Positions 1 through 26,491 of a stretch of DNA of 26,491 nucleotides are shown here, piece by piece. Source of the DNA: Paraphysomonas bandaiensis (taxonomy: Eukaryota > Protista > Chrysophyceae); assembly GCA_965644295.1 (NCBI GenBank), contig CBFFRP010000618.1:1-26491 (forward strand), in the 5' to 3' direction. A program made the position numbers and the translations under genes. Within the stretch, counting starts at the first letter, position 1. Every line of letters begins with the position of its first letter. The notes under the pieces were generated by a model, which saw only the letters and a list, made by a program, of their open reading frames with translations, did no database searches and was not told the origin of the DNA.

Positions 1-3000
1 ACTCTGGGATGAATGCTCTCGAATGGGGTGGTTATATAAATGCTGCGTGAAAATTATAAAATCTATTCGTATTACACTGGGCTGATTGCACTTTCCTATA
101 CCACAATTCATATGACACCCTTTTCAAGACAAAATTATATGTGGAGAGTTTATACATCATGACGGGTATTTCAGACTATTACAGATTATGTGTTTGAATA
201 CATTTCTCCCTAACCAATGCGATCCAACGTATATATATCATAACTGCTCATCGCTCACAACATATTAGCTAGTGATCCCTAATTCTGAAATGATCTCCGT
301 CACAGCGTTTATTACCTCCTCACGAATTCCCACACGAATAGTAGCTAAGTAGGCTTTCAACAACTCCGTCCTACGAAGCCGCTGGGACTCCTCATAGTCC
401 GCCCGACGGCTAAATACATTAGGTCTACGATTATTGTATCTACAATTAGCAGTGTGTCGGTGGGCATCGTCGCCACAGTCGTGTAGACAGTATCCACAGA
501 AACCACAGTTGCAATTCGGACAATAAAGAGCTAGACAATGATCGTAGTCCAAGCTATCTGGAGTGAACAGCCACGCACATCTCGGACATCTGAGGGACAA
601 AATACAATTCCTAATGTAGTTCCCGTGAGTTTGTATCTCTCTGTCCTTCTCAGATAAGGCAGCGAGGCGGGCCTTCTCCAGCCGCTGAGCCTCTTCGTAT
701 TCGCACCTTTCTCGCCAAGCAACAAGCTCACGCTCACTGCGTTGATACAAACGGTGAACCTCTTCTGTTAACAGTCGTACCACTTTATGGGAATCAAAGG
801 GACCCACATTACATCCGTGAGAATGGTAGGGACACATGATTCGGAACTCGCCACCGTAATCTGTTCGTTCTTCCCAAACCTCGTTAAACTCAGCGGCTCT
901 CATGTTAGGCCAAGGCTTCTGCAGCTCTGTGCTGTTAGCTACTTGCCTGAACTCCCTCAAAATATCTCCTTTGTTGCCTCGAAGGTAAAGGTCTCGTTGC
1001 CCAGATATGTCCCAAATGTGAACTAGTCGACGTCGACCTCTCTCTGACGTGGCCTCAACTTTGACATAAGCGTTAAGACAGCCTTCACAAGTAAAGTGCC
1101 GATCATCTCCTTTGCACTGTAGCCCCTGACACATATCTACCTCTTCATCACACAAACAACATACTCGCATGCGAGCTTGTTGTTCCTTCTCCTGTCTCTC
1201 CCGCTCCTGCGTTATCTCCCGCTCCTGACAAACGATTCTTTCCCGGAGGGTTTGAATATCATTGGCTAAATCTTGTATGGCGAAGAAAGACTTCTGTAGT
1301 GCATCTCGGGAGGAAAGTCGTTCCTCCGGGTTTTGACACAGAATCTCCCTAAGACGGTTCCTCAAATCATTGAGTTCTCCATCACACTCAGGAATCCTGT
1401 GCACTAGAAATTTATCCATACGGTCCCGATTACACTCGAGGCCGAAGATGTGAAGTACACACACACCAAAGGAGTACATATCGGAAGCATAAGACGGAGC
1501 ATCACCAATGAATATCTCAGGGGCCATAAAATCATGAGACCCTCTCATTTTCCCGCCCAAAGTAGACTGGTCTCGACTCAAGGAGTCGATAGAAATATCA
1601 AAATCCGTTAACATAGCGGTTCCTCTGTCCGAAATAAGGATATTGTCTGGTTTCACATCACAGTGTACCACATTATTGCCGTGCAAATGAGCCAACCCAT
1701 TCAGCACATCGTTGCATAATAGACGCTTGGACAATATGCTTAACCCATGTTCTTGTCTCTCCAGGTACAGCGCTAAGTTTCCGTTTACGTAGAAAGGCAT
1801 TTCTATATACGCTTTACCCTTCTCAAGGAATACAGCAGTGATGTCCGCTATGTACGGACTTTGACAATGGGTAGCTAATATGCGAGCTTCCCGCCAGAAG
1901 CTTTTCTGCTGGTCCTCATTGCTGCATGAAAAAGCTTTCAAAAATACGTTCCTCTTAGCAAAGCAACCCCTCATAACCATGTTTCGGCTGTTGCTCTCAA
2001 CTATTTCCAAGTCAGAGTAATCATGAATCGAACGGTCAATTATCAGTAACCCCTTAGCTATGTCAGGCAAATCTTTCGGGTCAAAACCAATCCCAGGAAG
2101 CAAGATTGGCATCTCGGGAAAATGAGTCAAAGCTATTCGAGAGAGAGCAGCTCGCTCTTTGCACAGTGCGTTACGCTTGAACTGAAGCTCTACTCTGGCA
2201 TTATTCAGATCTTCTCCGAGCTGTTGTTGTCTCGCTCTGTCACAATTATCACCCTTAAGTTCCTGTATTTTAATAGCATGCTCACACTCCGCTATATGTA
2301 TCTTAGCATTTCTAATATCGTCCAATAGGCCGGAGAAGATTTGTCCTTTGGGAGGACCATCAACCCACACCTCCATTTCCTTGAGCTGGCTTCGTATTCT
2401 GGCCCTTTGTTGCACAATTTCGGAAGCTTTATGACACCAGTATGAGGTAAACCGCGCGACTGCTACACATGCTTCCCTGGTATCTCTTCTTAAACCTGGG
2501 TAAAAACGCATTGGGTTCTGCCAGTGATCCCTCTCAACACGAAGACACTCATCCAATTCCTTCGAACAAACTTCCAGATTATGCATACTCATGCTATTTT
2601 CATCAACTAACATCTCCCCAACACATCCCAAACATTTATGAAATGCCGCAAGCGCTCTCTCTGACTCCTCAGCGGGGGAGCGCGAGCACTCACCCACCCA
2701 TTCTCCCACCTTATCTTCGAAATCCGACAGAAGCGTCATCAGCTCAGTAGACGATATATGACGGGTTTCTCCAGTGCATTCTTCAATCACCTCATTTCCT
2801 GACCATCTGCACCCATCGTAGACTTGCTTCAAAACCTCTAACCACTTTTCCACGGGAGCTGCGAGGGCTGTCCGCATTACAGATACCAGTTTACGCCGAA
2901 CACTATCGCGCTCACCCTGAAGCCCTTGTAGATATTCCATATCAACATCCTTACTTTCTACATGACTACGGATGGACTCTTGTAGGGACAAAAGCTTCCG

Positions 3001-3290
3001 CTCCAATTCTGCGAAGACACTGTCCGAACCATCTACTGACTCCACTGCCTCCATACAGGGAGCAGTTAACCACGAGTCTTTGCTTTCAAATGCCGACAAA
3101 AGGCCCATCACAGAGTCGCGTAGATCACCATCAGCAATGAAGGACACTAACTTCTCGCCACTAGAGATTATATCTGGCCTGCGCAAACTCCTCACTTCAA
3201 GAACTTTCGAATGCACAACAGAGACATAGGAAGCACATCGTCGAGCAGCCTGCTCATAACAACGATACCAATGATATCAAACATAACATA
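1..3290. repeat. Left arm of an inverted segmental duplication (partner ~14540-17828)
   Basis: Position 1 corresponds to 17828 (ACTCTGGGAT vs ATCCCAGAGT). The 264-nt 3' flank differs by about four substitutions and one short indel by eye. The two 983-aa ORFs align end to end. Homology runs to the window edge, so the arm may be longer. Confidence 0.95.
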
Positions 3291-5364
3291 TAACGGCATC
3301 GCCATAACACACATACCTCTGCAGCAGCAGAGGCTTCTTCCTGTCTCTGCCTCTCAGCCTATACAATAATACACATACAACATAATTGAAAACAAAACAT
3401 ACACAACACCTATATACTACACCAACCATACCAATACTATCAAACATAACATATAACTACATCACCATAACACACATACCTCTGCCTCTTCCCATCTCTG
3501 CCTCTCAGCCTATACAATAATACACATACAACTTAATTGAAAACAAAACATACACAACACTTATATACTACACCTACCATACCAATACTATCAAACACAA
3601 CATACAACTACATCACCATAACACACATACCTCTGCAGTAGCAGATTTCTCTTCCTGTCTCTGCCTCTCAGCCTATACAATAATACACATACAACATAAT
3701 TGAAAACGAAACATACACAACACCTATATACTACACAAACCATACCAATACTATCAAACACAACATACAACTACATCACCATAACACACATACCTCTGCC
3801 TCTTCCCATCTCTGCCTCTCAGCCTATACAATAATACACATACAACTTAATTGAAGCCAAAACATACACAACACCTATATACTACACCTACCATACCAAT
3901 ACTATCAAACACAACATACAACTATATCACGATAACACACATACCTCTGCAGCAGCAGATTCCTCTTCCTGTCTCTGCCTCTCAGCCTATACAATACACA
4001 TATGATTCCAGTAAGTTGTATCTGTAGTTCTGCGATTGCTTCGAAGGATTCATACTAACATGTGCACTTCTGATGATTTGACGCATCGCATCACTTTTGG
4101 CCAAGTCAACAGGAGTCTTTCCCTTCTGAAAATATAACAAACATAAAAAGGGTGACACAATACGTATCACTTTTCACATAATGAGTCTGTGGGGGTATAT
4201 ATACATGTGTGTGTAGAGGGGTTACTTGCTTCGTCTCGTATATGAATATCTGCTCCTGCTCTTATAAGATACTCAGCTATATGTCTGTGACCATTACATA
4301 CAGCCCAGTGAAGAGCATTCCTACCAAACTATAAAACAAAATAATAATCACATATGAATATATATATGTGTGTTGAGGGGTTACCTACATTGTCTCGTAT
4401 ATGAATATCAGCTCCTTCACTTATGAGATACCCAGCTGTATCTCTCTGACCTTCAGAGGCAGCAAAGTGAAGAGCTGTCCAACCTAACTATAAAACAATA
4501 ATAACAATCAAATACGAGCCTTATCACTCTATGAATGTATATATACGTATGTACGTATGAATATGTATGTATATATGTTACTTACATTGCTTTGTTTACT
4601 CATATCTGCTCCTTCTCTAATAAGATACTCAGCTATGTCTCTGTGACCTTCAGATACAGCCGAGTGAAGAGCTGTTCTACCACACTATAAAACAAAAATA
4701 GTAATCACATATGAGCTTTCATAATACTGTATGTACATGTATATCTATATAGGTATACGCTACGTGTGTGTGTACATGTATATCTGTTTCTTATATGTCA
4801 AGTGTATATATACGTATGTGTTACTTACTTTGCTTCGTGTATGTATGTCTGCTCCTGCACTTATAAGATACTCAACCATACCTCTCTGACCTTCAGATAC
4901 AGCAGAGTGAAGAGCTGTATTACCATCCTATAAACAGTAATAGTAATCAAATATGAGCCCTTAGAGCACTCTATGTATGTATGTATGTGTATAGAGGGGT
5001 TACTTACATCGTCTCGTATAGTTATATCTGCCCCTACTCTTACAAGGTATTCAGATATGTCTCTGTGACCTTCAGAGGCAGCCCTATGAAGAGCTGTAAC
5101 ACCATCCTAATAAACAATATCAATGATCACATATGAGCCCTTATAGTATTGTATGTATGTATATCTATTCATATAAGTATGTATATGTATGTATGTGTGT
5201 GTATGTATATCTATTCCTATGTGTATGTATGTATGTATATGTATGTGTATGTGTGTGTGGTGTACCTTATCTTTTATATTGATGTTATCACCCCTCCCAA
5301 CACACTTCTTCACTTCATTGAAGTCACCCCTCGCAGCTGCTGTAATTATATCATCCATCTTCAT
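265..5364 (-). CDS. Gene A: ankyrin-repeat / coiled-coil / protein kinase / RBR-like E3 ligase protein, 13 exons, ~1276 aa
   Basis: Hand-spliced exons, all phase 0: 5364-5266 (MKMDDIITAAARGD...IKDK); 99-nt ankyrin exons 5106-5008, 4927-4829, 4684-4586, 4487-4389, 4328-4230; cap exon 4125-4060 (KGKTPVDLAK...SAH); micro-exons 3986-3945, 3823-3794, 3672-3631, 3509-3480, 3358-3317; terminal exon 3249-265, in frame with the 983-aa ORF. Motifs VFLK, HCDVKPDN, DFD, FMAPE, SDMYSFG, CCLC...HFTCEGC...CPYHSHGC, CPRC...HCLALYCPNC...FCGYC. All introns GT-AG except one GC-AG. Confidence 0.9.
3317..3989 (-). repeat. Tandem micro-exon/intron array in gene A with a 314-bp higher-order unit
   Basis: Exons alternate 42 nt (AERQRQEExSAxAE) and 30 nt (AERQRWEEAE). 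The four intervening introns are near-identical and each exactly 121 nt. Exon start spacing is 163/151/163/151. Confidence 0.93.
4126..4229 (-). other. Non-canonical GC-AG intron of gene A
   Basis: After the 99-nt exon 4328-4230 the minus strand reads GCAAGTAACCCCTCTA, where sister introns read GTAAGTAACCCCTCTA. The next GT (4225) would shift the frame. The acceptor TTTTCAG ends at 4126. Confidence 0.7.
4230..5106 (-). repeat. Ankyrin exon-intron tandem array of gene A (5 internal repeats)
   Basis: Five 99-nt exons encoding xGxxALHxAxxxGxRxxxxYLxxxGADxxxxxx, separated by related introns. Confidence 0.93.
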
Positions 5365-7802: not shown

Positions 7803-8419
7803 TCACTCATTTGTGAATGGAGGTATCAATCTGTGTAGGTGTGCCCAGGACAATGTGTATTTAATATAATCTGAATTATGAAACTGGGTGTACTAGTTAG
7901 CTGGTTTATGATTTGGACTGTGGTAGGAAAAATGACTCGTGTTCGCATTCTGTATGTGAGGGTAATTTATAATTATAGTACTTCTTTTTGGTATATTTTT
8001 ATTCGTTGGGTATATCTGAAACTGAAAAGGCGGATTGCTTAGTTCATAATACCTTGTCTGGTGAAGGTTCATCCGTTAATTAATAAACATATCGTAGTTG
8101 CAATCTCTAAGAACATGATGGTGATGCGGTATTACAGTCATCGGTTGTTGGCGTATGAGGGGTTGAAAGAACACTGTCTTCGGTTATATGACTCGCTATT
8201 ACAAATATTTGGCTCAACTAGACTGTTCGAATTTAAACTTATTACGTTCGTTAAAAAATCGAAGCAAGGACTTCGCTCTCATGACGTAAACATATCACAT
8301 ATCATACTATAAATCACATCAACGTTATAGCCATCCTTCTAAGGGCGCAACAAGAAATGAAAAAATATGACATGCTACATGAACGACCTCTGAAGAAAAG
8401 GTCGTTCACTTCGACGCCC

Positions 8420-9442
8420 TCACACGAGGCGGACTTCGCCACAGGCGACTCTCGCACCAGCATTTCCTACAAATTAAAGCCAATGAAAACACCATGCACA
8501 CAGATGTATCGGTATACATGTATCATATGTAGACAATAAACCAGCGACATACATATACAACAAAGAGCATACCAGTAGTTAGGGAAAGCTCGTGTCCCCC
8601 CTTGCCAAGATCATCAGGGTCCGCGTGCACCATAACAGATCTTCCTACCACTGTAAACTCGCCGGAACTATACGGAATGATATCAAACAATACATTGTAG
8701 ATATAAGATTAGAATTCATATACAAAAAAGAAGCATTGCATGAAGCGGGATAGAATCGCATATGTGCCACTACAATGGATACAGACACGGCAGTATTCCA
8801 ACTTTGCATTATAATATCATGAAATCAGCTCATACATTCTCACTAAATGGTCAGTGATGCTTCCTTCTGCAACTCCAGATGCATCGGCTTCAATGTTTCC
8901 AAGATCCCCCGCATGACGGACCTAAACACTGACATTAGACACAACTCACATCAATCTAATAAGATGATACCTCATCAGTTGGACCACCGTGAGTATGTCC
9001 ATGGGGGTTATAGTGAGGACCCGCAGAGGTACACCCATTTGAAAAATCAGCAAATTCATGACTAAAAATAATTTTTTAATAAATAAATAATAATAAAAAA
9101 TTGGAATTATATACATGTATATATATATATGAGTGTATACAGCATGTATATATATATATATATAAGTGTGTATGTATGCGAGTACGTATGTATATACATA
9201 CATGAGTGTATATATAAAATATGCCTTTGTGATATACATACATATACATATATGTGTGTATGAGCTTACATATGGAATCCATGTAGACCCGGAGTGAGAC
9301 CCGTCACACGATAATTAATAACACATGGACCATTCTCTCCGTCCTGTTCAAAGTGAACGATACCATGAACACCAGTGGATCCTTCACTGCCGTCACAGCT
9401 TCTTCCGTTAGGGCCTACTTCACAGATTGCTTTGATTGACAT
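8420..9442 (-). CDS. SOD1: Cu/Zn superoxide dismutase, 5 exons, 163 aa
   Basis: Not in the ORF track. Exons 9442-9270, 9061-8971, 8921-8836, 8667-8573 and 8466-8420 splice to [10 protein letters not shown]...[51 protein letters not shown]...[38 protein letters not shown]. All Cu/Zn ligands, the disulfide Cys pair and the catalytic Arg are present. No signal peptide. Confidence 0.96.
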
Positions 9443-9949
9443 GGTGATGTTAGTACAGAAGTCGAGTTATATTAGAATGAATATATGAACATGTATGCAT
9501 GTATGTATGTATGTATGTATGTATGTATGTATGTATGTATGTATGTATGTATGTATGTATGTATGTATGTATGTATGTATGTATGTATGTATGTATGTAT
9601 GTATGTATGTATGTATGCATGTATGTATGTATGTATGTATGTATGTATGTATGTATGTATGTATGTATGTATGTATGTATGTATGTATGTATGTATGTAT
9701 GTATGTATGTATGTATGTATGTATGTATGTATGTATGTATGTATGTATGTATGTATGTATGTATGTATGTATGTATGTATGTATGTATGTATGTATGTAT
9801 GTATGTACAGTATCTTGGTGTAGTGGGTTCCTGTGGTGTCCAGATTTCAATGTCAGTCATTATTATCACAAAATAAACAAGTTCATAACACTATCATTAC
9901 TATCAACTTGTGGCCTGTCAGTTTCTTGTATCATCTAAGAGAGATTGAG
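9443..9949. promoter_or_regulatory. Probable bidirectional promoter of SOD1 and gene C
   Basis: Only 507 nt separate the divergent ATGs (9442 -, 9950 +), and 317 nt of that is microsatellite. Confidence 0.4.
9491..9807. repeat. (TATG)n microsatellite, ~79 units
   Basis: Near-perfect tetranucleotide run with only two T>C interruptions (9498, 9618). Confidence 0.98.
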
Positions 9950-12900
9950 ATGTTTAAAGCTGCTCGTGAGGGTAAAATCAGAGACGTGCAGAGGTGTATT
10001 AGGAGAGGTGTGAATATTAATGAAAAGGACCAGGTAAACCATACACACACATAGAATATATGTACCATAATGATACAGTGTTCTAAGGGCTCATATGTGA
10101 TTATTATAATTGTTTATAGGATGGTTATACAGCTCTTCACTCTGCTGTATCTGAAGGTCAGAGAGGTATGGTTGAGTATCTCATAAGAGCAGGAGCAGAC
10201 ATACATACACGAAGCAAAGTAAGTAACACATACATATACATACACATATAGATAGATAGTGTATTAAGGGCTCATATGTGATTATTATAATTGTTTTATA
10301 GGATGGTTGTACAGCTCTTCACTTGGCTGTATCTGAAGGTCAGAGAGACATAGCTGAATATCTTATAAAGGCAGGAGCAGATATTCATACACGAGCCAAT
10401 GTAAGTAAAATATATAAAAATATATGTACATACACATATATATAGATAGAGTGTTCTAAGGACCCATATGTGATTATTATAATTGTTTTGTAGGATGGTA
10501 ATACAGCTCTTCTTTTGGCTGTATCTGAAGGTCAGAGAGACATAGCTGAATATCTTATAAAGGCAGGAGCATATATTCATACACGAAACAATGTGAGTAA
10601 CCCCTCTATAAACATACATACATACATATATATATACAGTGTTATGAGGGCTCACATGTGATTATATATAGGATGGTGGTGTAGCTCTTCTCTTGGCTGT
10701 ATCTAAAGGTCACAGAGATATAGCTGAGTATCTGATAAGAGCAGGAGCAGATATAACTATACGAGACAGAGTAAGTAACCCCTCTACATCTATATACATA
10801 CATAACTACAGAGATGCAGTGTTATCTTGTATAGACTACAGGGCTCATGTGATTGTTTTTATTTTGTTTTATAGGATGGTAATACAGCTCTTCACGATGC
10901 TGTCTCTACAGGTCACAGAGATATAGCTGAGTATCTTATAAAGGCAGAAGCTGATATTAATGCACGGAACAGTGTAAGTAACCCCTCTACACATACATAC
11001 ATATGATACATACATATGTACATACACACATATTATATACATATAATCATATCGTGTTATAAGGGCTCATGTTTGATTATAATATATGTTTCACAGGATG
11101 GTTGGACAGCTCTTCTCTTGGCTGTCTCTCAAGGTCACAGAGATATAGCTGAGTATTTGATAAGAGAAGGAGCAAATATTCATATTCGAGACGATGTAAG
11201 TAACCCCACTAGATACATATACATACACATATATACATACATAACTATAGAGATACAGTAGACGCATATGTGACTACTGTTATTGTGTTTTATAGGATGG
11301 TAACACAGCACTTCACAAGGCTGTCTCTGCAGGTCACAGAGATATAGCTGAGTATCTTATAAAGGCAGGAGCAGATATTAATGCGCGGAACAATGTGAGT
11401 AACCCCTCTATACACATACATACATATGAACATATATATAACAATATCGTGTTATAAGGGCTCATATTTGATTATGATATATATTTTATAGGATGGTTGG
11501 ACAGCACTTCACAAGGCTGTCTCTGCAGGTCACAGAGATATAGCTGAGTATCTTACAAGAGAAGGAGCACATATTAAGATACCAAACAATGTAAACAATT
11601 CCGCCCCTCTATACACATATACATACATTTATAGATACATACAGTAAGGACTCATATGTAATTATTATTGTGTTTTATAGGATGGTAATACAGCTCTTCA
11701 CGATGCTGTCTCTGAAGGTAAGGGAGATATAGCTGAGTATCTCATAAGAGCAGGAGCAGATATGAATAAACAAAACAATGTAAGTATCCTGTCTACACAC
11801 ATATGTATACTTATATACATATAATCAAAATGTGTTTCTAAGGCTCAAATGTTATTATTATGATTCTTTTGTAGGATGGTTGGACAGCACTTCACAAGGC
11901 TGTATCTAAAGGTCACAGAGATATAGCTGAGTATCTTATAAGAGAAGGGGCAGATATTCAAATACGAGACAATGTATGTATCACATGAAAACACACATAT
12001 GTACATATATACATATACATATAATCATATCGTGTTGTAAGGCTCAAATCTTATTATTATAATTCCTTTGTAGGATGGTTGGACAGCTCTTCTCTTGGCT
12101 ATATCTAAAAGTCACGGAGATATAGCTGAGTATCTTATAAGAGAAGGAGCAGATATGAGTAAACAAAGCAATGTAAGTATCACGTCTACACACGTATGTG
12201 TGCATACATAGATATATATATAATCATAATGTGTTTCTAAGGCTCATATGTGATCCTTATAATTGTATTATAGGATGGTTGGACAGCTCTTCTCTTGGCT
12301 GTATCTAAAGGTCACAGAGATATAGCTGAGTATCTTATAAGAGCAGGAGCTGATATTCATACACGAGACGAGGTAAGTAACCCTTTTATACATACATATA
12401 TATATATATATATATAAACATATCGTGTTAGAGGAGCTCATATGTGATTATTATAATTGTATTATAGGATGGTTGGACAGCTCTTCCCTTGGCTGTCTCT
12501 GAAGGTCACGTAGATATAGCTGAGGATCTTATAAGAGAAGGATCAGATATGAATGCACAAAACAATGTAAGTATCACATGAAAACACATATATATATAGA
12601 TATACTTATGTACATACATACATATTTACACCTACATATTTACATATAATCATATCGTGTTATAAGGGCTCATATGTGCTTACTATTATTGTATTACAGG
12701 ATGGTTGGACAGCTCTTCACTGGGCTGTCTCTCAAGGTCACAGAGATATAGCTGAGTATCTTATAAGAGAAGGAGCAGATATTCATATACGAGAAAGTGT
12801 AAGTACCCCTCTATGGCTACCTACTTATACATATATATATACATATATATATACATATAATCATATCGTGTTATAAGGGCTCATATGTGATTATAATATA

Positions 12901-15900
12901 TGTTTCATAGGATGGTTGGACAGCTCTTCTCTTGGCTGTATCTGAAGGTCACGAAGATATAGCTGAGTATCTTATAAAAGAAGGAGCAGATATTCATATA
13001 CCAAACAATGTAAGTAACCCTTCTTTAGATACATATAAACGCATACATATATACATATGATAATATGGTGTTATAAGGGCTCATATGTGATCCTTATAAT
13101 TGTATTATAGGATGGTTGGACAGCTCTTCTCTTGGCTGTATCTAAAGGTCACAGAGATATAGCTGAGTATCTTATAAGAGAAGGAGCAGATATACATACA
13201 CGAAACAATGTAAATAACCCCTCTACACATACATACGCATATATATATATATATATGTGAATGTATCGTGTTATAAGGGCTCATGTTTGATTATAATATA
13301 TGCTTCACAGGATGGTTGGACAGCTCTTCACTTGGCTGTCTCTGCAGGTCACAGAGATATAGCTGAGTATCTTATAAGAGAAGGAGCAGATATGAGTAAA
13401 CAAAGCAATGTTAGTAACCCTTCTATAGATTCATACCTACTTACATACATATATATATACATATATATTGTTATAAGAGGGTTCATATGTGATTATTATA
13501 ACTGTATTATAGGATGGTTGGACAGCTCTTCACAAGGCTGTCACTAAAGGTCACAGAGATATAGCTGCGTATCTCATAAGAGAAGGAGTAGATATTGAGA
13601 TAAGAAACAATGTAAATAACCCCGCCCCTCTACGCACATATATAGATATGCAAACATACATACATATACATGCACACACGTATAAGGGATCATTTTATAA
13701 ATTTTGATATATATATACCCCACAGACCCATTATGTGAAAAGACGATATGAACATGCGGCGACTGACTGTGCCACTTCTTTTTGTGATGTTAATAGTTTT
13801 TTTCGCAGAAGTGCAAGACTCCTGTTGACTTGGCAAATGATGAAGCGATGCGTGAGCTCATCATAAATGCACATGTTAGTATATATCCTGTACCCTTCAT
13901 CGCATTGTAGAGCTAGAAATATATCATATGTATAATTGTACAGGCAGAAAGGCAGAGACAGGAAGAGAACGCTGCTGCAGAGGTATGTGTGGCTGTGGTA
14001 TGATATGTTGCATAGTATTGCTACGGTTGGTGTGTACAGGTGTCGTGTTTTTGTTTTTGTTTTAATTGAGTGTGTGTGTATTATTGTATAGTCTGAGAGG
14101 CAGAAACAGGAAGAGGAAGCTGCTGCTGCAGAGGTATGTGTGTTACGGTGATATAGTTATATGGTATGATATGTGTGATTTCATTGGTGTTGTTAGTGTA
14201 ATATATAGATGTCCTGTTTGCTTTGGTTTTTATTGAGTTTGTTTGTATTGTATAGGCTGAGAGGCTGAAGCAGGAAGTGGAAGCTGCTGCTGCAGTGGTA
14301 TGTGTGTCATGAGTTATGTAACAGAAACATATATAAGCTTGCAGTTTATATATTATGACAACCTAACATATAGATGTTTGAAGTATACATGTGTCACACA
14401 CGAGTATATGTGTGAAGTATTCATATAGTACATATATATATGCAGTATGTATGTAACGTGTACATATAATTCGTACATTTATGTGCATGCAGTACGTATA
14501 TAATGCAGATATATATATGATGTAGTTATATATGGTATGATATTTTTGATATCATTGATGCGGTTGTTATGAGCAGGCTGCTCGACGATGTGCTTCCGAT
14601 GTCTCCGTTGTGCATTCGAAAGTTCTTGAAGTGAGGAGTTTGCGCAAGCCGGATTCAACCTCTCGTGACAAGAAGTTAATGTTCTTCATTGCTGATGATG
14701 ATCTACGCGACTCTGTAATGGGCCTTTTGTCGGCATTTGAAAGCAAAGACTCATGGTTAACAGCTCCCTGTATAGAGGCAGTGGAGTCAGTAGATGGTTC
14801 GGATAGTGTCTTCGCAGAATTGGAGCGGAAGCTTCTGTCCTTACAAGAGTCTATCCGCTGTCATGTAGAAAGTAAGGATGTTGATATGGAGTATCTACAA
14901 GGACTTCAGGGTGAGCGCGATAGTGTTCGGCGAGACCTAGTGTCTGTAATGCGGACAATCCTCGCAGCTCCCGTGGAAAAGTGGTTAGAGGTTCTGAAGC
15001 AAGTCTACGATGGGTGCAGATGGTCAGGAAATGAGGTGATTGAAGCTGTAGAATGCATTGGAGAAACCCGTCATATATCGTCTACTGAGCTGATGACGCT
15101 TCTGTCGGATTTCGAAGATAAGATGGGAGAATGGGTGGGTGAGTGCTCGCGCTCCCCCGCTGAGGAGACAGAGAGAGCACTTGCGGCATTTCATAAATGT
15201 TTGGGATGTGTTGGGGAGATGTTAGTTGATGAAAATAGCATGAGTATGCATAATCTGGAAGTTTGTTCGAAGGAATTGGATGAGTGTCTTCGTATTGAGA
15301 GGGATCACTGGCAGTACCCTATGCGTTTTTACCCAGATATAAGGCGAGATACCAGGGAAGCATGTGTAGCAGTCGCGCGGTTTACCACATACTGGTGTCA
15401 TAAAGCTTCCGAAATTGTGCAACAAAGGGCCAGAATACGTAACCAGCTCGAGGAAATGGAGGTTTGGGTTGATGGTCCTCCCAAAGGAGAAATCTTCTCG
15501 GGCCTATTGGACGATATTAGAAATGCTCAGAAGCGTATTGCGCAGTGCAAGTTTGCTATTGAAATTCAGGAACTTGAGGGTGATAAATGTGACAGAACGA
15601 GACAACAACAACTCGAGGAAGATATGAAAAATGCGAAAGTAGATCTTCAGCTCAAGCGTAACGCACTGTGCAAAGAGCGAGCTGCTCTCTCTCGAATAGC
15701 TTTGACTCATTTTCCCGAGATGCCAATCTTGTGTCCTGGGATTGGTTTTGACCCGAAAGATTTGCCTGACATAGCTAAGGGGTTACTGATAATTGACCGT
15801 TCGATTGGTGATTACTCTGATTTAGTCGAGAGCAACAGCCGAAACTTGGTTATGAGGGGTTGCTTTGCTAAGAGGAACGTATTTTTGAAAGCTTTTTCAT

Positions 15901-17561
15901 GCAGCAATGAGGACCAACAGAAAAGCTTCTGGCGGGAAGCTCGCATATTAGCTACCCATTGTCAAAGTCCGTACATAGCGGACATCACTGCTGTATTCCT
16001 TGAGAAGGGTAAAGCGTATATAGAAATGCCTTTCTACATAAATGGAAACTTAGCGCTGTACCTGGAGAGACAAAAGCATGGGTTAAGCATATTGTCCAAG
16101 CGTCTATTATGCAACGATGTGCTGAATGGGTTGGCTCATTTGCACGGCAATAATGTGGTACACTGTGATGTGAAACCAGACAATATCCTTATTTCGGATA
16201 GAGGAACCGCTATGTTAACGGATTTTGATATTTCTATCGACTCCTTGAGTCGAGACCAGTCTACTTTGGGCGGGAAAATGAGAGGGTCTCATGATTTTAT
16301 GGCTCCTGAGATATTCATTGGTAATTCTCCATCTTATGCTTCCGATATGTACTCCTTTGGTGTGTGTGTACTTCACATCTTTGGCCTCGAGTGTAATCGG
16401 GGCAGTATGGATAAATTTCTAGTGCACAAGATTCCTAAGTGTGATGGAGAACTCAATGATTTGAGGAACCGACTTAGGGAGGTTCTGTGTCAAAATCCGG
16501 AGGAACGACTTTCTTCCCGAGATGCACTACAGAAGTCTTTCTTCGCCATACAAGATTTAGCCAATGATATTCAAACCCTCCGGGAAAGAATCGTTTGTCA
16601 GGAGCGGGAGATAGCGCAGGAGCGGGAGAGACTGGAGAAGGAACAACAAGCTCGCATGCGAGTATGTTGTTTGTGTGATGAAGAGGTAGATATGTGTCAG
16701 GGGTTGCAGTGCAAAGGAGAGGCTCGGCACTTTACTTGTGAAAGCTGTCTTAACGCTTATGTCAAAGTTGAGGCCACGTCAGAGAGGGGCCGACGTCGAC
16801 TAGTTCACATTTGGGACATATCTGGGCAACGAGACCTTTACCTTCGAGGCAACAAAGGAGATATTTTGAGGGAGTTCAGGCAAGTAGCTAACAGCACAGA
16901 GTTACAGAAGCCTTGGCCTAACATGAGAGCCCCTGAGTTTAACGAGGTTTGGGAAGAACGAACAGATTACGGTGGCGAGTTCCGGATCATGTGTCCCTAC
17001 CATTCTCACGGATGTAATGTGGGTCCCTTTGATTCCCATAAAGTGGTACGACTGTTAACAGAAGAGGTTCACCGTTTATATCAACGCAGTGAGCGTGAGC
17101 TTGTTGCTTGGCGAGAAATTTGCCATTACGAAGAGGCTCAGCGGCTGGAGAAGATCCGCCTGGCTGCCTTATCTGAGAAGGACAGAGAGATACAAACTCA
17201 CGGGAACTACATTAGGAATTGTATTTTGTCCCTCAGATGTCCGAGATGTGCGTGGCTGTTCACTCCAGATAGCTTAGACTACGGCCATTGTCTAGCTCTT
17301 TATTGTCCGAATTGCAACTGTGGTTTCTGTGGATACTGCCTACACGACTGTGGCGACGATGCCCACCAACACACTGCCAATTGTAGATACAATAATCGTA
17401 GACCTAATGTATTTAGCCGTCGGGCGGACTATGAGGAGTCCCAGCGGCTTCGTAGGACGGAGTTGTTGAAAGCATACTTAGCTACTATTCGTGTGGGAAT
17501 TCGTGAGGAGGTAATAAACGCTGTGACGGAGATCATTTCAGAATTAGGGATCACTATCTAA
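9950..17561 (+). CDS. Gene C: ankyrin-repeat / coiled-coil / protein kinase / RBR-like E3 ligase protein, 24 exons, ~1679 aa (paralog of gene A)
   Basis: Exon 1 is 9950-10033 (MFKAAREGK...EKDQ; first in-frame ATG, an upstream exon is not excluded). Eighteen 99-nt exons start at 10120, 10302, 10494, 10672, 10875, 11097, 11296, 11492, 11681, 11875, 12074, 12274, 12468, 12700, 12911, 13111, 13311 and 13513. Then cap exon 13809-13874, micro-exons 13944-13982, 14092-14133, 14256-14297, and terminal exon 14577-17561. All are GT-AG, phase 0 and stop-free. Kinase ~15810-16545, RING1 16665-17015, Rcat 17238-17384. Confidence 0.92.
10120..13611 (+). repeat. Ankyrin exon-intron tandem array of gene C (18 internal repeats, ~180-230-bp period)
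   Basis: Each unit is AG|GATGGTnnnACAGCTCTT...GGTCACAGAGATATAGCTGAGTATCTTATAAGAG...|GT plus an intron with conserved ends and a TA/CA microsatellite core. Confidence 0.96.
13944..14297 (+). repeat. Three helical-linker micro-exons of gene C
   Basis: AERQRQEENAAAE (39 nt), SERQKQEEEAAAAE (42 nt), AERLKQEVEAAAAV (42 nt), each flanked by AG and GTATGTGT. Their introns are more diverged from each other than those in gene A. Confidence 0.88.
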
Positions 17562-17828
17562 TATTATGTTGTGAGCGATGAGCAGTTATGATATATATAT
17601 GTTGGATCGCATTGGTTAGGGAGAAATGTATTCAAACACATAATCTGTAATAGTCTGAAATACCCATCGTGATGTATAAACTCTCCACATATAATTTTGT
17701 CTTGAAAAGGGTGTCATATGAATTGTGTTATAGGAAAGTGCAATCAGCCCAGTGTAATACGAATAGATTTTATAATTTTCACGCAGCATTTATATAACCA
17801 CCCCATTCGAGAGCATTCATCCCAGAGT
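14540..17828. repeat. Right arm of the inverted segmental duplication (partner 1-~3290)
   Basis: Reverse-complement match to the window start, covering the acceptor of the terminal exon, the whole exon and the 3' flank. Confidence 0.95.
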
Positions 17829-18477
17829 AATTATAAATGGATCTATAACTGAAAGTCTTTATATTTAGCAATAGGCGTTATAAACCTGTACCAATATAGT
17901 GGCTAGTTGAATGGCTAGACATACTAGCTAGCTAAATGAAGATATTTATCACAGTGTGGAAAATATTATTTATTACTTACTTACATAACACTTCAGTTTT
18001 ACAGTAATAAAGTCAACGACTACACAATTCAAGCTATTCAGTCATTAGCATAAAGTTATTGTTTGTACGACACCCCACGAATATTACGTCGACGTGTCAT
18101 CCGATCATAACATTCTCAGATAAGAGCACGCATTGGTTCACTCATTCTGTTGTAGGATTTGTCACTATTACCCATTGCTGTTTTTAGTCCTTTTCTTTGA
18201 CGAAGTTACTGTAGATAATATATATAAAACAAACACTAATATACTTAATAATATAACATAAATATACATAATAATATCAACCTGCTGCTAAGTGCCTCAA
18301 GTAACTTGCCGCTAGCTTGTAGACATGCTGTCCATTATTATAGTTGATGTCGTAAAAGTATTTTTGCTGTATACCTGAGTATACCTCTTAAATTTAATTA
18401 AATATATGTGTTACATGTAGCTACTTACCTCAGAAGTAATACCTCTTAAATTGTATATGATGTTGGAGTGAACAATG

Positions 18478-21400
18478 TTAATCTGATTCATGGTCTGACA
18501 CTTCTTGTTCTTCATCCTCGAAATCACCTTCTGTTAAACGGGTTGCATTTATACGCACCTGCAGTAGCATTTTTCCTGTTGACGTAACGTCGTGCTTCTG
18601 CTCCAAAGTACGGTGCATTGAGCGCTCCTCTCGGTTCGCCAGGTAAAGATCTGATGCGTTGCGTTCGGCTACATGACCGGTCGTACCCTCCTCTAAGCGC
18701 ACAAGGTTTAATATATTCACCTGGCAGTACTAGTTTAACATCGAAACATAGAGTACACAGCACACTAGAACAACTGCCGTCACTAAATCACTACATATCC
18801 ATGCATGTACTCACTCTGTTGTACAGTTAACCGTAGCAAAATAATCGAATGTCATTATTACAACGTTGTACACTCGTTACTGCCTGCTATTAATTAAAAC
18901 TCTTCTTAAACTAATTCTTCCATATAACACACTTGCTAGCACGAACAAGTACATATGGTAACAATTGCACGTCATGGTACTCATACATCTCCGGCATCTC
19001 CGTTTGGTACAGCAGCGTACTCAATACGATTAACATGACTACGCACATTTCGTAGCTCCATGGTGATGTTATTGATATCACCAAACAATTGCTCCCACCG
19101 CCGGTTCTTCAAATTTTCGCTTCGCAGTTTCGATTTAAGCATTTCATCACTGACAACTGTCAAAATGACACCAACAATGATAATCAGCCATTCAAACCAG
19201 CGCGGTGCTGTCAAGTGAAATATGTCTTGAACCACGGGAACAAATACAACAATGAAAGTACAAGACATACTGAAAAGAATGGCCTTGATCATTGCAGTGT
19301 TACGGAAAGGATCATTGCGGATGGCCAAACTGAAAGATCTAGCAGTCAGAGGTCGCAAACACTCTGCAAAAGTAATAATAAGGAACACCATTGTCCGGGC
19401 AATCTTTAGTCCATCTTTTACACAGTCACCTGACTCCACTTCCACCCAAGTTCCACTTGACGTCAACTGATTACACTGTGTGATGAGATCGCCATCATCA
19501 TTGTACATATTGTCGATAAGCACCACACCAATATTCCACCACAAGCCCATGAAGAATGTAAGCAACATAAAAACGACAAGTACAGTGGCGTGTCCAAGAA
19601 TGCCGACAGCGATCACTCCGCTGAGAATTCTGGAATTTTTCTTTCTAGGAGGTTGTCGCATGACGTCTCCTTCTGGATCCTCAATACTGAGTGCAACGGC
19701 CGGCATTCCGTCAGTGATCAAATTGATAAACAGAATCTGCAGCGGTTCCAACGGATTCGGCATGCCGATAAGAAGAGACAATAAGATCACAAGAACTTGA
19801 GACCAGTTAGTGCCAATAAAATACATGACAAATTTGCGCAGATTGCTGTATATAGTTCGAACCCATTTCAATAGCACCAACAATCGAAGAAAATTTATCG
19901 TCAGTTAAAATCATATCAGAGGCTGCTTTGGCTACTTCCGAGCCTGCTATACCCATCGCAATACCAATATTTGCTTGCCTCAAGGCAGGGGCATCATTTA
20001 CCCCATCTCCTGTCATTCCGCATACTTTGCCTTGTCGCTGAAAAGATTTCACAATTTGAATTTTGTCCTCTGGTCGTGCCCGAGCAAAGACAAATGTGTG
20101 CCAGCGTTATTTCATCGATTTCCCGAGCACTCAAATAGTCACCATTGGGTCGGAGTACAGAGCAGTCGACGGCACACTCAGTTTCATCCATCGTAGGCCC
20201 AACTATGTTAATCATCTTAGCGATTGCTACAGCAGTTTTTAAGTAATCTCCGGTGATCATAACAGTCCGAACACCACCTTCCTTTGCCGTCAAAACAGCT
20301 TTCTTACCCCTGGTCGAGGGGGGGGTCCATCATACCTATTAGGCCTGAGAATACCATATTGGACACGAGCACATCTGAGCTTATCTTCAGTGGGGACAGA
20401 CTCGTCATCCTCATCAACAGCTATAGTCGTAGAACGACGATAGCAGGCCGCAAGAACACGTAAACCAAGATCAGATAGGCGGTCACATTCCTTGACGATA
20501 TCGCTCCGCATGTCAGCAGTGAGTTCAGTGACAACGGTGACCAGACCCATCATGCTCGTCACGAATCACGTATTTACACTTATTTAATAGGACAAGTGGG
20601 GCCCCTTTGGACATTACAACCAAGTTGTTTTGGTCATTTGCTTTGTCTGAAGATGAGTTCGGGGCAGGTATAAAATATTTGAACCGCTCTTCTTGGAGTC
20701 TATGCACTGAGGCCATCATTTTGAACTTGGAGCCAAATGGAACAACACACTCCTGAGGGTTTGACTTTCTGTACTCTCCCGTGTGGCGATACCGAATTTT
20801 TGGGAGGCTACAACCAGGGCCGCTTCGGTGGATGTACCAATAGGAACCCACTTGCCTTCATTGTAACGTAGACCGAGCTGGCATATAGCACGAGTCACCA
20901 TTGTGGCAGCCAGTGCAACAATCGACTGAGAATGAGGACCGTTTGTCACTTGGTTATCTTTTGAGTCCATCACATGGCCTTGCGTCGGATCATATCCACT
21001 CCCACTCAATGCTGTAGAGTCTCTCGTACGTCCACATCTGGGTGGCGGTCATTTTCCCAGTGTAAGGGTTCCAGTCTTATCACTGCATACAACAGAAGCA
21101 GACCCCAGAGTCTCGACAGCGGGCAAACGGCGAATCAAAACATTTCGCTCTGACACAGCGTGTGTTCCTAGTGCCAAGCACATGACAACAACAAGTGGAA
21201 GTCCCTCAGGAATCGCAGACACAGCCATACTAACCGCAAGCATCAAACTCTGGAGCCAAGGAGGATTGTCTTCATTATTCGGGTCTCTAAAGTTACGTAA
21301 AATACCGATAATTATCACCAACACAGCACCAGTAATCGCAAAGCCAGTCATAATGAGACCCAAATGATGGATTTCATCTTGTAAAGGAGTTCGCTTCGGC

Positions 21401-22438
21401 TGTACACTCGACATGAACTTCTTTATAGACGTGCAGCAGTTGGTGGCATTAACGACATACGACACAGAGAAGCTCGAAGTCTTCTTCTCAGTCTTTATGA
21501 TCATCCTCTTCTTCATCAGACTCATACTCTTCCGATTCAGAACTTCGGTTTTCTTGAATCTCACTCATTGAATCGATGTATACGAGATTGCATTTCTTGT
21601 GGTACTTTATTCTCACTGCTATCATTCTCAGGTCCTTGATTAAGTAAAGTAGCAATTGATCCCAACACTGTGTATTCATACCCGTTAAAAGGACAACACC
21701 CGTAAGTTTTCCATCCACCATACTAGTTGATCCATATACCATATTCACTGCAGTTAATTTATTTTCATCTTCTTTCAAGTGTTGTACGAGCAGATTTCTT
21801 TACTTCCGCTCGATTCCACCCGTTAAGATCATTTCATTCACTTTCACATGATGTGATTCAATTATTCGTATATCAGCAGTGAATCCAAATCACCCGTTGG
21901 CGATAAAACAATAATATCACCTGGTACAATATCACATGTTGATATCATTTCTAATTGTCCATTACGATATACATGTGAATGTGGATCAGCTAAGGATGCT
22001 AATGCTTCTAATGCATTCCCAGATGAACATTCAGTATATGTTGCTAGCAGATGCGCTGTACTTCAAAATAATAATCAAATACAGCAATACCTTCAACTAA
22101 ATTCACCAACAAGTAATTGATACAATAGCAGCAATCATTAATATAATAATCACAATATTAACAAACTGTGATAAAAAATAATAACCATAGTGGAATACGT
22201 TTAGGGTTTGGTTAACTCATTTGTACCATATAGATGTAATCTACGTATTACTTCATCTGGAAGTTAATCCATTAGATATATTAGTACTTAATGCACCAAC
22301 CACATCTTCATATGGTATATTAGAATTAGCGTATTGGTTTAATTCTTCAGATGAAATCACTTCATTACTTCGGTGATGTTTTTTACGTAATAATTCACAT
22401 GCTTTTTCTTCATCAAAAGATGCCATTTCAACACTCAT
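18478..22438 (-). CDS. Type II P-type cation-transporting ATPase (ATP4/ENA-like Na+ pump or SERCA/PMR1-like), frame broken by many indels
   Basis: Motifs occur in the correct order across nine ORF pieces: GLTS..YGTNEL, DIVPGDI, corrupted [43 protein letters not shown], corrupted [49 protein letters not shown]. First ATG at 22438. The ORF stop is at 18981, but GAT|GTATGA (18986) and CCAG|GTG (18720) allow an in-phase last exon 18720-18478. Confidence 0.85.
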
Positions 22439-22970
22439 ATAATTCAAGATAGTCTTAATTCACTTAGTGCAAAGTATGACCAATCTCAATCACTTTCCTC
22501 CCATATTTCCTAACTATGAATTGTGTATAATAAACATTCATTCTATATACACTTTCGGGAAATCTTTCATGACATATTCTTGACTCGCTAAATTTACTTT
22601 TTTTTTCTATTATTTTCTACGACAATTTTGAACGAACATCAAATTCATATATATAACACACTACATTTTTTTGTTTATGTAAAATTGAAGAATGAAATTT
22701 TACAAATCATCCCACTGTCGTAGCGTCAATCTGACAAAATTTGATAATCAAACAACAATTTTTCTACCAATCATATTCTTATAAATCGATGTAATTGGCT
22801 AAATAAAAAATAACGTCAGAAAAATCATTTTGATATGCGGAATTACCAGTTCATGGATGGATCTCGGAAGATCGCAACCCGCAAAATACATTCGTCATTG
22901 AAAAAAAATCAAACCGTCAGAGATCTGTATAGCCAATCATCAATCTGTATAAGGTGCTGATTATGAAGAA

Positions 22971-23594
22971 ATGGTTCGCTCAGTGATTGTGGTGAGCCAG
23001 ATACTTAGGCACGCACATATATTGCAGCACCACCACCAATTGGCACTCACTATCCAATGGTCAATGTGTCTAGCATGCGTAGCGCCAGTGCAGTCGTTCT
23101 TAATACGATGGTACATGAAATGGTCTCACTTTTCCCTGTGGTCACATGAGCATGCACCAGCAAGCTATGCTTGCACCAACTCGAATCTTAGCCATGTGCT
23201 ATGATCACACATCAACCAGTACTGTCAATCACTGATGTAACTCGGAGAATTCAACAACTGAATGCACGTGACTGAAGTTCCGGGTTCTATCAATGAAGCG
23301 CAAATCTACTGCTCTTTTACCAAAATCGAGAGCCCTAACCAAGCTTCTGAATCATATATGTCTGCACACGTCATCGAGTTTGTTCGAATATTCGCTGTAG
23401 CAACTTTTACTGCATTGGCGGCAGTTCAAATCTGGCGGGAGCATGGATATTATTAGAGCATCGAGCGTTTGTTTTATTTTCTTGCAGGTTGCTGCTAGGA
23501 ATTGCAACAGCTACCCTGGATTGAAGCGTTGCAGTCGGCGCTGACAACAGCATACCACGATGATTTGGCATTAGTTTTAACGTGTTTGCTGTGA
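22971..23594 (+). CDS. Possible small hypothetical gene, structure unresolved
   Basis: GC-richer island between AT-rich spacers, with short open frames (22971-23204, 23262-23456, and ELQQLPWIEALQSALTTAYHDDLALVLTCLL* ending 23594). No recognisable motif. Confidence 0.25.
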
Positions 23595-24015
23595 AATAAA
23601 TTAAAGTGCACAGAATACATGTACTTTATAGTCTCATATAGATTGAATCATATTGCTATTTGACTGTTTGTCTGCAACATGTTTTCATGAGTTGTGTCGT
23701 TATAAATATGAAATATGAACGTTATAGTAATATATGTATTCTTGTGGCCAATGGTTGTATTAATTATTCTAGTTAGAATATATTTTTATTGTTCTAAAAG
23801 GGGATGTAATAGTATCATAATCGAGTTATTTTAATGAAAACGCAGTCGTCATATTTACAATTCCTAACCACGAATGCTCTGTTGCACGTACTCATGTGTA
23901 CTTGTTTAGTTATACTAAATCCCGTATTCATTGGTTGCTTAAAAGTGCTACATCCAATATAGACGAAAAATGCTGCACATCTTTGAAAAAAGAGAGTTGG
24001 TACTCGTAGCTGATT

Positions 24016-26302: not shown

Positions 26303-26491
26303 CTGAATATAAAAAACTTACAACGGCTAATATATATTATCAACAGTATACTTGTATAACAAGCAAAACACAATTACAAATATCAAGTTTGCTTTACCGC
26401 AATAACAACAAACCTATAATAGAATCTCTTTACTAAACTCTTGCCATATACATTCACACAAGTGGAATATAACTTTTATTAACAACTTACC

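Follow-up and report, generated by a model that had tools for sequence, protein, structure and literature searches.

In brown algae, the leucine-rich repeats (LRRs, 72 nt) and tetratricopeptide repeats (TPRs) of ROCO and NB-ARC genes were found to be encoded by one exon per repeat, recent paralogs differed in repeat number (13 versus 17), and diversifying selection was inferred (Zambounis 2012, PMC3341825). Somatic recombination was also hypothesised for these genes, and exon shuffling in Ectocarpus was essentially restricted to LRR and TPR loci (PMC3341825). The architecture was confirmed by Teng et al. in 2024, who reported several splice isoforms and noted that no somatic recombination had been found (PMC11378527). 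Exon shuffling was listed among the possible mechanisms in surveys of repeat expansion (PMC1553488, PMC7314423). Here, the same design was analysed for ankyrin repeats in the chrysophyte Paraphysomonas bandaiensis. An array of 18 ankyrin exons of 99 nt was contained in a gene, named gene B, on contig CBFFRP010000618.1 (assembly GCA_965644295.1), of which the whole analysed stretch of 26,491 nt is referred to as the window. The brown-algal receptor genes with one LRR or TPR per exon are the closest precedent of this array.

The favoured explanation, to which a probability of about 0.72 was assigned, is that the array of exons and introns evolved by unequal crossover in the germline and that its transcript is spliced constitutively into one solenoid. 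An inverted paralog of gene B, named gene A, was located in the same window and is used for comparison throughout.

Ankyrin exon layout in gene B and its family

Gene B (9950–17561, + strand) encoded a predicted protein of ~1,679 residues, which was composed of an N-cap, 18 internal ankyrin repeats, a C-cap, a short charged spacer, a kinase domain, and a Cys-rich C-terminal module. The gene was complete from the start codon to the stop, with both caps present and all exons open. A pattern scan of the window gave exactly 18 AG–99 nt–GT units on the + strand, between positions 10120 and 13611. All units were in the same frame (frame 1) with phase 0–0, and no stop was contained in their 594 codons. 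The introns of the array varied from 79 to 133 nt while the exons were invariably 99 nt; therefore, length change was tolerated in the introns and not in the exons. The peptides of all 18 exons matched the Pfam ankyrin family (PF00023, Ank), with a best E-value of 1.5e-12. The match reported in full had a score of 39.9 bits, with the cut-off at 21.1, and covered profile positions 1–33 of 33, which showed that the exon borders of gene B coincided with the Pfam repeat register. The flanking exons were also whole numbers of codons (84 nt for exon 1, 66 nt for the cap, and 39, 42, and 42 nt for the mini-exons), and therefore every intron of gene B was in phase 0. The pairwise identity among the ankyrin exons was 75–94%, and an N-type and a W-type alternated in exons 5–10.

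The 99-nt exon layout is genuine and far beyond chance. The preliminary description of the window, in which each internal repeat was a single 33-codon phase-0 exon without a stop or an indel, agreed with the pattern scan and Pfam for 18 of 18 exons. Its further statement, that skipping or duplication of any subset of the exons would preserve the frame, holds formally, and the 2^18 subsets are a formal ceiling only.

The surveyed genome comprised 62.5 Mb in 669 contigs, and the contig labels used below (C followed by a number) refer to contigs of this genome. A two-exon probe gave at least 224 matches on many contigs. With a nucleotide profile of the 18 gene B exons, 200 units were detected in 20 sampled loci (the arrays on C186, C260, and C436 were sampled by half), and 194 of the 200 were intact, with AG, 99 nt, and GT (or GC) and without stops. 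The longest array contained 32 or more exons, on a contig made of nothing else. The other six units were degenerate, having lost a splice site or acquired a stop or a frameshift, which indicates occasional exon death within arrays; degenerate units were located on C571 (L021, 3060–3342), C365 (L016, 6920–7580), and C640 (L028, 5014–5112). One repeat per exon is the standard layout of the whole family and is not peculiar to gene B. Its presence in 20 loci reinforced an earlier caveat, that layouts of this kind also occur in ordinary ankyrin genes.

An exon–exon junction pattern gave no match in the same genome, and thus no intronless retrocopies were present. A pattern of this kind gave seven matches in metagenome contigs, all of which were unrelated ankyrin genes of other organisms. 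The best 150 matches of an exhaustive profile search with the 18-exon alignment were unrelated ankyrin proteins of giant size with no more than 45% identity to gene B, and no transcript of the family was found among them. Parts of gene B were contained in sequencing runs labelled marine or seawater metagenome, including polyA metatranscriptomes.

Evolution and splicing of the array

Three parts were distinguished in the introns of the array: a conserved 5′ element directly behind the donor, a CATA/TA microsatellite core that was variable, and, ahead of the acceptor, a conserved block of ~45 nt. The 3′ block was assigned as a putative branch region and pyrimidine tract. Between the units of gene B, the identity was 76% in the last 45 nt of the introns, 70% in the first 16 nt, 83% in the exons, and 83% at the third positions of the exons. 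The identity of the intron blocks was close to that of the exons, which means that the whole block of exon and intron was the repeat unit. Tandem Repeats Finder (TRF) gave periods of about 192–200 and 381 in the array. The exact 5′ element occurred in 57 copies in the genome, all but nine on contigs with ankyrin arrays, and the remaining nine were on C41, C438, and C526. The possibility that the intron was a mobile introner-like element was rejected because the 5′ element was nearly confined to contigs known to hold ankyrin arrays. On C526 (9071–18544), exact 5′ elements were located on the + strand at ~9.1–9.6 kb and on the − strand at ~10.6–18.5 kb, which suggests a further pair of oppositely oriented arrays, like genes A and B.

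When the units of the family were compared with each other, the nearest neighbour was in the same array for 70% of the units, compared with 7% when the labels were shuffled. Exons with 100% identity were present in several other arrays, and higher-order repeats of two and eight units were also found. The number of repeats was 5 in gene A, 18 in gene B, and 7 and 11 in the paralogs on C138 and C263, respectively. Clear orthologous pairs between genes A and B were restricted to A2/B1 (97%) and A3/B17 (91%). A pairwise homoplasy index (PHI) test on the 18 exons of gene B gave p = 0.0005 with a sliding width of 5 informative sites, and the 5′ and 3′ halves of the exons were weakly correlated (Mantel r = 0.24). 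Both results are compatible with gene conversion or crossover inside the units. Taken together, the comparison of units and paralogs supported tandem duplication, loss, and partial homogenisation of exons with their introns in the family arrays over evolutionary time, probably by unequal crossover. The finding documents an evolutionary mechanism and not a new molecular process. The preliminary description had attributed a repertoire either to unequal crossover or to Dscam-like splicing. The former was supported as germline evolution by the clustering, the identical exons, and the 5 versus 18 repeats, whereas the latter gained no support: the donor and acceptor signals were uniform, and no unique docking element was found.

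Most of the variation between the gene B repeats was held by ten of the 33 positions, namely 3, 7, 8, 12, 24, and 29–33. The ratio of non-synonymous to synonymous differences (pN/pS), a crude pairwise count that compares repeats of one protein and not alleles, was 2.44 at these ten positions and 0.46 at the framework positions; the former value was inflated, as the positions were picked from gene B itself. The synonymous divergence was the same in both classes, with values of 0.153 at the variable and 0.159 at the other positions. When the positions defined in gene B were applied to 15 other arrays, the ratio exceeded 1.4 in 11 of them; these arrays are a fairer test and yet are not independent lineages. 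All 18 exons were equally well conserved at the framework positions. In a register mapping of our own, the positions randomised in designed ankyrin repeat proteins (DARPins) presumably include five of the ten (3, 12, 24, 31, and 33), and positions 7, 8, 29, 30, and 32 are taken not to belong to the DARPin library. In part, the variable positions would coincide with the face by which ankyrin repeats bind ligands. The pattern of variation points to selection for differing binding surfaces, and we infer a receptor-like binding role of gene B.

The donor sequence was GTAAGT in 12 of the 18 ankyrin exons, and four donors were non-consensus (GTAAAC, GTTAGT, and GTAAAT twice). All acceptors were AG, preceded by a T-rich tract. 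Folds and duplexes were computed for the array introns other than intron 2 (region 10593–13512 for the duplexes). The folds of the introns were unremarkable, with a mean z of −1.05, and no consistent fold was found across the array introns. The long inverted repeats of the region were microsatellite-based. An arrangement of docking and selector sequences was not found in these introns: no docking site was unique, and every intron, the first among them, had copies of the conserved blocks in the same sense. The 5′ element (AACCCCTCTA-like) was partly complementary to the conserved block (TATAAGGGCT-like) before the likely branch region, and the duplex between them had a z of about −6 against shuffled controls. 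This pairing might serve as a bridge that brings the intron ends and splice sites together. The duplex energy was −8.79 kcal/mol within an intron versus −8.75 kcal/mol between introns. The pairing was thus equal in both cases and carried no information on the order of splicing. Introns as hosts of small nucleolar RNAs or other known RNAs were rejected, since Rfam gave only sub-threshold matches to microRNAs of the microsatellite type.

In most protists, short introns are recognised by pairing of the splice sites across the intron, and intron retention occurs rather than exon skipping. The lengths of the array introns (79–133 nt) suggest that the splice sites were likewise paired across each intron, which disfavours skipping. 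The transcript of gene B is most likely spliced constitutively into one 20-repeat solenoid.

In the favoured explanation, the unit of duplication would be a block of ~200 bp that contains an exon and its intron, and each internal repeat would for that reason be one 99-nt phase-0 exon. The arrays would grow, shrink, and be partly homogenised in the germline, over evolutionary time, by unequal crossover or gene conversion between homologous blocks. Selection would hold the exons at exactly 99 nt, open, and with the framework residues kept, and differences between repeats would accumulate mainly at the ten positions that partly match the ligand-binding face. The transcript would be spliced intron by intron. 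Several points weigh against this explanation. Within gene B, the repeats differed by a synonymous divergence of ~0.16 and no exon pair exceeded 94% identity, and therefore its array had undergone no very recent expansion or duplication. The PHI signal could stem from linked sites within selected codons and not from recombination. The choice of the variable positions from gene B and the shared ancestry of the other arrays limit the pN/pS comparison as stated above. Constitutive splicing was deduced from the sequence alone, the four non-consensus donors could mark skippable exons, and the brown-algal precedent has splice isoforms, up to nine of which were reported for Ectocarpus ROCO genes (PMC11378527).

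These last points bear on a reasonable, clearly minor possibility, namely that some of the 18 exons are cassette exons and that occasional or regulated skipping adds a modest set of shorter in-frame isoforms to the germline evolution of the array. All exons are symmetric, so that any skip would remain in frame, and the equal pairing of the 5′ and 3′ elements within and between introns would not enforce the splicing of neighbours. However, skipping is disfavoured by the short introns, and no exon stood apart from the others in the conservation of its framework. Regulated combinatorial or mutually exclusive splicing in the manner of Dscam, by which a large receptor repertoire would be drawn from gene B, is very unlikely, even though the locus is a tandem array of homologous symmetric exons with variation concentrated at likely binding positions. 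The lack of a unique docking site, the same-sense blocks in all introns, the unremarkable folds, and the microsatellite origin of the inverted repeats argue against it. Each exon encodes a full repeat of a naturally multi-repeat solenoid, unlike the choice of one domain out of N, and the recurrence of this layout in 20 or more arrays, whose lengths differ widely, is a better fit to structural arrays than to splicing clusters.

Cassettes might also be shuffled within one individual lineage if its DNA were rearranged somatically or in a programmed manner, as it is for the variable lymphocyte receptors (VLRs) of lampreys and as was hypothesised for Ectocarpus. Such shuffling is suggested only by the cassette architecture and by the brown-algal hypothesis itself (PMC3341825). 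It is hardly to be expected here, because gene B, with its two caps, is an intact and complete germline gene, the array and its surroundings gave no inverted or inactivated cassettes even at relaxed thresholds, and no such rearrangement was shown even in brown algae (PMC11378527). An incomplete germline gene with donor cassettes, as for VLRs, was not matched either, with no flanking cassette banks within the window. Receptor diversification in general, in which the cassettes would be actively recombined, whether at the RNA level through regulated combinatorial splicing or at the DNA level through somatic exchange, is judged improbable. If it were true, the products of a single locus would present numerous ankyrin binding surfaces joined to a kinase and a Cys-rich effector module, and the system would be the ankyrin-based equivalent of the adaptive-like immunity that has been hypothesised for brown algae. 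The chance is practically negligible that an artefact of assembly produced the array, or that it is a pseudogene-like satellite in decay. Several arrays of the family are on short contigs made of repeats only (C508, C571, and C640), and a second copy of the locus, on C453, breaks off inside the large exon. Nevertheless, the 594 stop-free codons, the exact exon length beside variable introns, and the framework pN/pS of 0.46 speak against it, the pairwise identity of 75–94% is low enough to assemble, and about a quarter of the sampled words of gene B were contained in polyA metatranscriptome runs.

Gene A, the large exon, and neighbouring features

The positions of the features in the window are given in Table 1. 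Gene A had five 99-nt ankyrin exons without a stop or an indel, as had been described before, with the nuance that its fifth exon had a GC donor instead of GT.

Table 1. Exons of genes A and B and other features of the window. ANK, ankyrin repeat.
Feature	Position	Strand	Remark
Gene B exon 1, start codon and N-terminal capping half-repeat, 28 codons	9950–10033	+	phase 0 end, then GTAAAC donor
Gene B ANK exon 1 (99 nt)	10120–10218	+	97% identical to gene A exon 2
Gene B ANK exon 2 (99 nt)	10302–10400	+	pattern scan, PF00023
Gene B ANK exon 3 (99 nt)	10494–10592	+	pattern scan, PF00023
Gene B ANK exon 4 (99 nt)	10672–10770	+	pattern scan, PF00023
Gene B ANK exon 5 (99 nt), N-type	10875–10973	+	start of the N/W alternation
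Gene B ANK exon 6 (99 nt), W-type	11097–11195	+	pattern scan, PF00023
Gene B ANK exon 7 (99 nt)	11296–11394	+	90% identical to exon 5
Gene B ANK exon 8 (99 nt)	11492–11590	+	donor GTAAAC, non-consensus
Gene B ANK exon 9 (99 nt)	11681–11779	+	pattern scan
Gene B ANK exon 10 (99 nt)	11875–11973	+	pattern scan
Gene B ANK exon 11 (99 nt)	12074–12172	+	92% identical to exon 17
Gene B ANK exon 12 (99 nt)	12274–12372	+	93–94% identical to exon 16, closest pair of the array
Gene B ANK exon 13 (99 nt)	12468–12566	+	pattern scan
Gene B ANK exon 14 (99 nt)	12700–12798	+	pattern scan
Gene B ANK exon 15 (99 nt)	12911–13009	+	pattern scan
Gene B ANK exon 16 (99 nt)	13111–13209	+	donor GTAAAT
Gene B ANK exon 17 (99 nt)	13311–13409	+	donor GTTAGT; 91% identical to gene A exon 3
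Gene B ANK exon 18 (99 nt)	13513–13611	+	donor GTAAAT
Gene B C-terminal capping half-repeat exon, 22 codons (66 nt)	13809–13874	+	82% identical to gene A cap exon
Gene B three mini-exons (39/42/42 nt), Glu/Arg/Ala-rich, charged	13944–13982, 14092–14133, 14256–14297	+	phase 0; each in a homologous exon and intron unit
Gene B large last exon, 2,985 nt	14577–17561	+	N-terminal region without known relatives, kinase (PF00069), Cys-rich module
Gene A, inverted paralog of gene B	265–5364	−	same plan, five 99-nt ANK exons
Gene A exon 1, 99 nt	5266–5364	−	
Gene A ANK exons, 99 nt each	5008–5106, 4829–4927, 4586–4684, 4389–4487, 4230–4328	−	no stop or indel; GC donor in the fifth (4230–4328)
Gene A cap exon	4060–4125	−	
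Gene A mini-exon array	about 3317–3989	−	
Gene A large exon	265–3249	−	protein 93.5% identical to gene B large exon
Cys-rich module, ~300 residues	16600–17558; 271–1230	+; −	
(ATGT)n microsatellite, ~79 copies	9491–9807		just upstream of gene B exon 1
P-type cation ATPase gene	18981–22447	−	PF00689 C-terminal domain

The large exons of genes A and B differed by a pS of 0.088, with a pN/pS of 0.36. Four full-length copies of the large exon (at least 83% protein identity), two partial copies, and one distant copy were found in the genome. These copies were few, and most ankyrin arrays were therefore located away from any of them. On contig C453, positions 8000–21279 duplicated window positions 14937–26491, from within the large exon of gene B onward. 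The protein was 100% identical over residues 110–983 of the large exon, and the downstream DNA was 93.7% identical with 229 gap openings over the 8.3 kb compared. The copy ended inside the large exon; a diverged haplotype might account for it, as might a recent segmental duplication of which the ankyrin array is absent from the assembly.

The last exon of gene B contained a protein kinase domain (PF00069, E-value 5e-30), the sole Pfam domain found there. The N-terminal part of the large exon had no detectable relatives in a protein search. Word-based protein searches with the whole exon, with residues 1–400, and with the first 250 residues gave only distant kinases and one helicase protein, without transcripts or orthologs, and an exact-protein look-up gave no record. 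The Cys-rich C-terminal module had no match to Pfam and none to the sequences of the PDB, and its identity as a RING-between-RING (RBR) E3 ligase was dropped on this basis. The module was 34% identical over ~210 residues to the C-terminus of a 1,587-residue protein of a public assembly (P0001), which contained Upf1-like helicase domains. From this similarity, it looks like a shared, unnamed, putative zinc-binding module.

The mini-exons, of 39–42 nt and phase 0, formed a second, independent tandem array of exons and introns, which encoded the charged, Glu/Arg/Ala-rich spacer. Three were present in gene B and more in gene A, where the array extended over ~740 nt (3260–3996, − strand) with a TRF period of ~151 nt and 4.7 copies. 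The (ATGT)n microsatellite was located between the divergent paralogs A and B. Downstream of gene B, the P-type cation ATPase gene consisted of overlapping pieces of open reading frame in different frames, which a large number of very short introns, like those of the ankyrin genes, would explain.

Comparison with known systems

The equal length and symmetric phase of the exons and the homology of the introns in gene B were those of a tandem exon-duplication array in the sense of Patthy. In the arthropod Dscam arrays, exon duplication has likewise produced tandem, homologous exons that are exchangeable in frame. However, one exon of many is selected there by RNA pairing between docking and selector sequences, an arrangement that was not found here, and each exon of gene B is one unit of a multi-unit fold. 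In DARPins, as in gene B, a few positions vary within a consensus framework, whereas gene B is natural and gave no evidence of a library-like use.

In animals, many repeats of ANK1, ANK2, ANK3, and other ankyrin genes are single exons of 99 bp. These genes resemble gene B in having one 33-residue repeat per exon and a long solenoid, and their splicing is constitutive. Their repeats and introns are old and diverged, whereas the introns of gene B were ~76% identical over the last 45 nt, and a large lineage-specific family with variation focused on few positions was present here. Highly internally conserved ankyrin, TPR, and WD40 repeats, fused to signalling domains, are said to have been described in fungal NOD-like receptors by Dyrka et al. 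in 2014, with unequal crossover as the thought mechanism. The near-identical tandem repeats of these receptors reportedly vary at few surface positions and are located within single exons, whereas every repeat in gene B has its own exon and intron.

The brown-algal LRR and TPR genes were the most similar to the array of gene B. In both, one exon of fixed length encodes each repeat, the phases are symmetric, and the introns are homologous. The number of repeats differs between recent paralogs (13 versus 17 there, and 5 versus 18 here), diversifying selection was inferred there and may act here, and the repeat array is fused to a signalling domain in a large family. The repeat is ankyrin (99 nt) here and LRR (72 nt) or TPR there, and the partner is a kinase with a Cys-rich module here and ROC-COR or NB-ARC there; a ROC-COR or NB-ARC core was not found in the large exon, for which Pfam gave only the kinase. 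Inverted or intronic dead exons, which are the hallmark of 'highly dynamic shuffling' in brown algae, were also not found here. No repeat exons were present on the non-coding strand, as the nhmmer matches of each array were all on one strand, and a search with E-values up to 10 gave one extra fragment within an array, in another locus; the introns of gene B lack the length to accommodate one.

Provided that it can be grown in culture, the organism would be a convenient system for cassette arrays because of its small genome and short introns, and it could be addressed there whether such arrays are a mechanism of evolutionary growth only or are also used within a lifetime. With a family of hundreds of exons, ankyrin is the third repeat class, beside LRR and TPR, that shows the brown-algal design of one repeat per exon.

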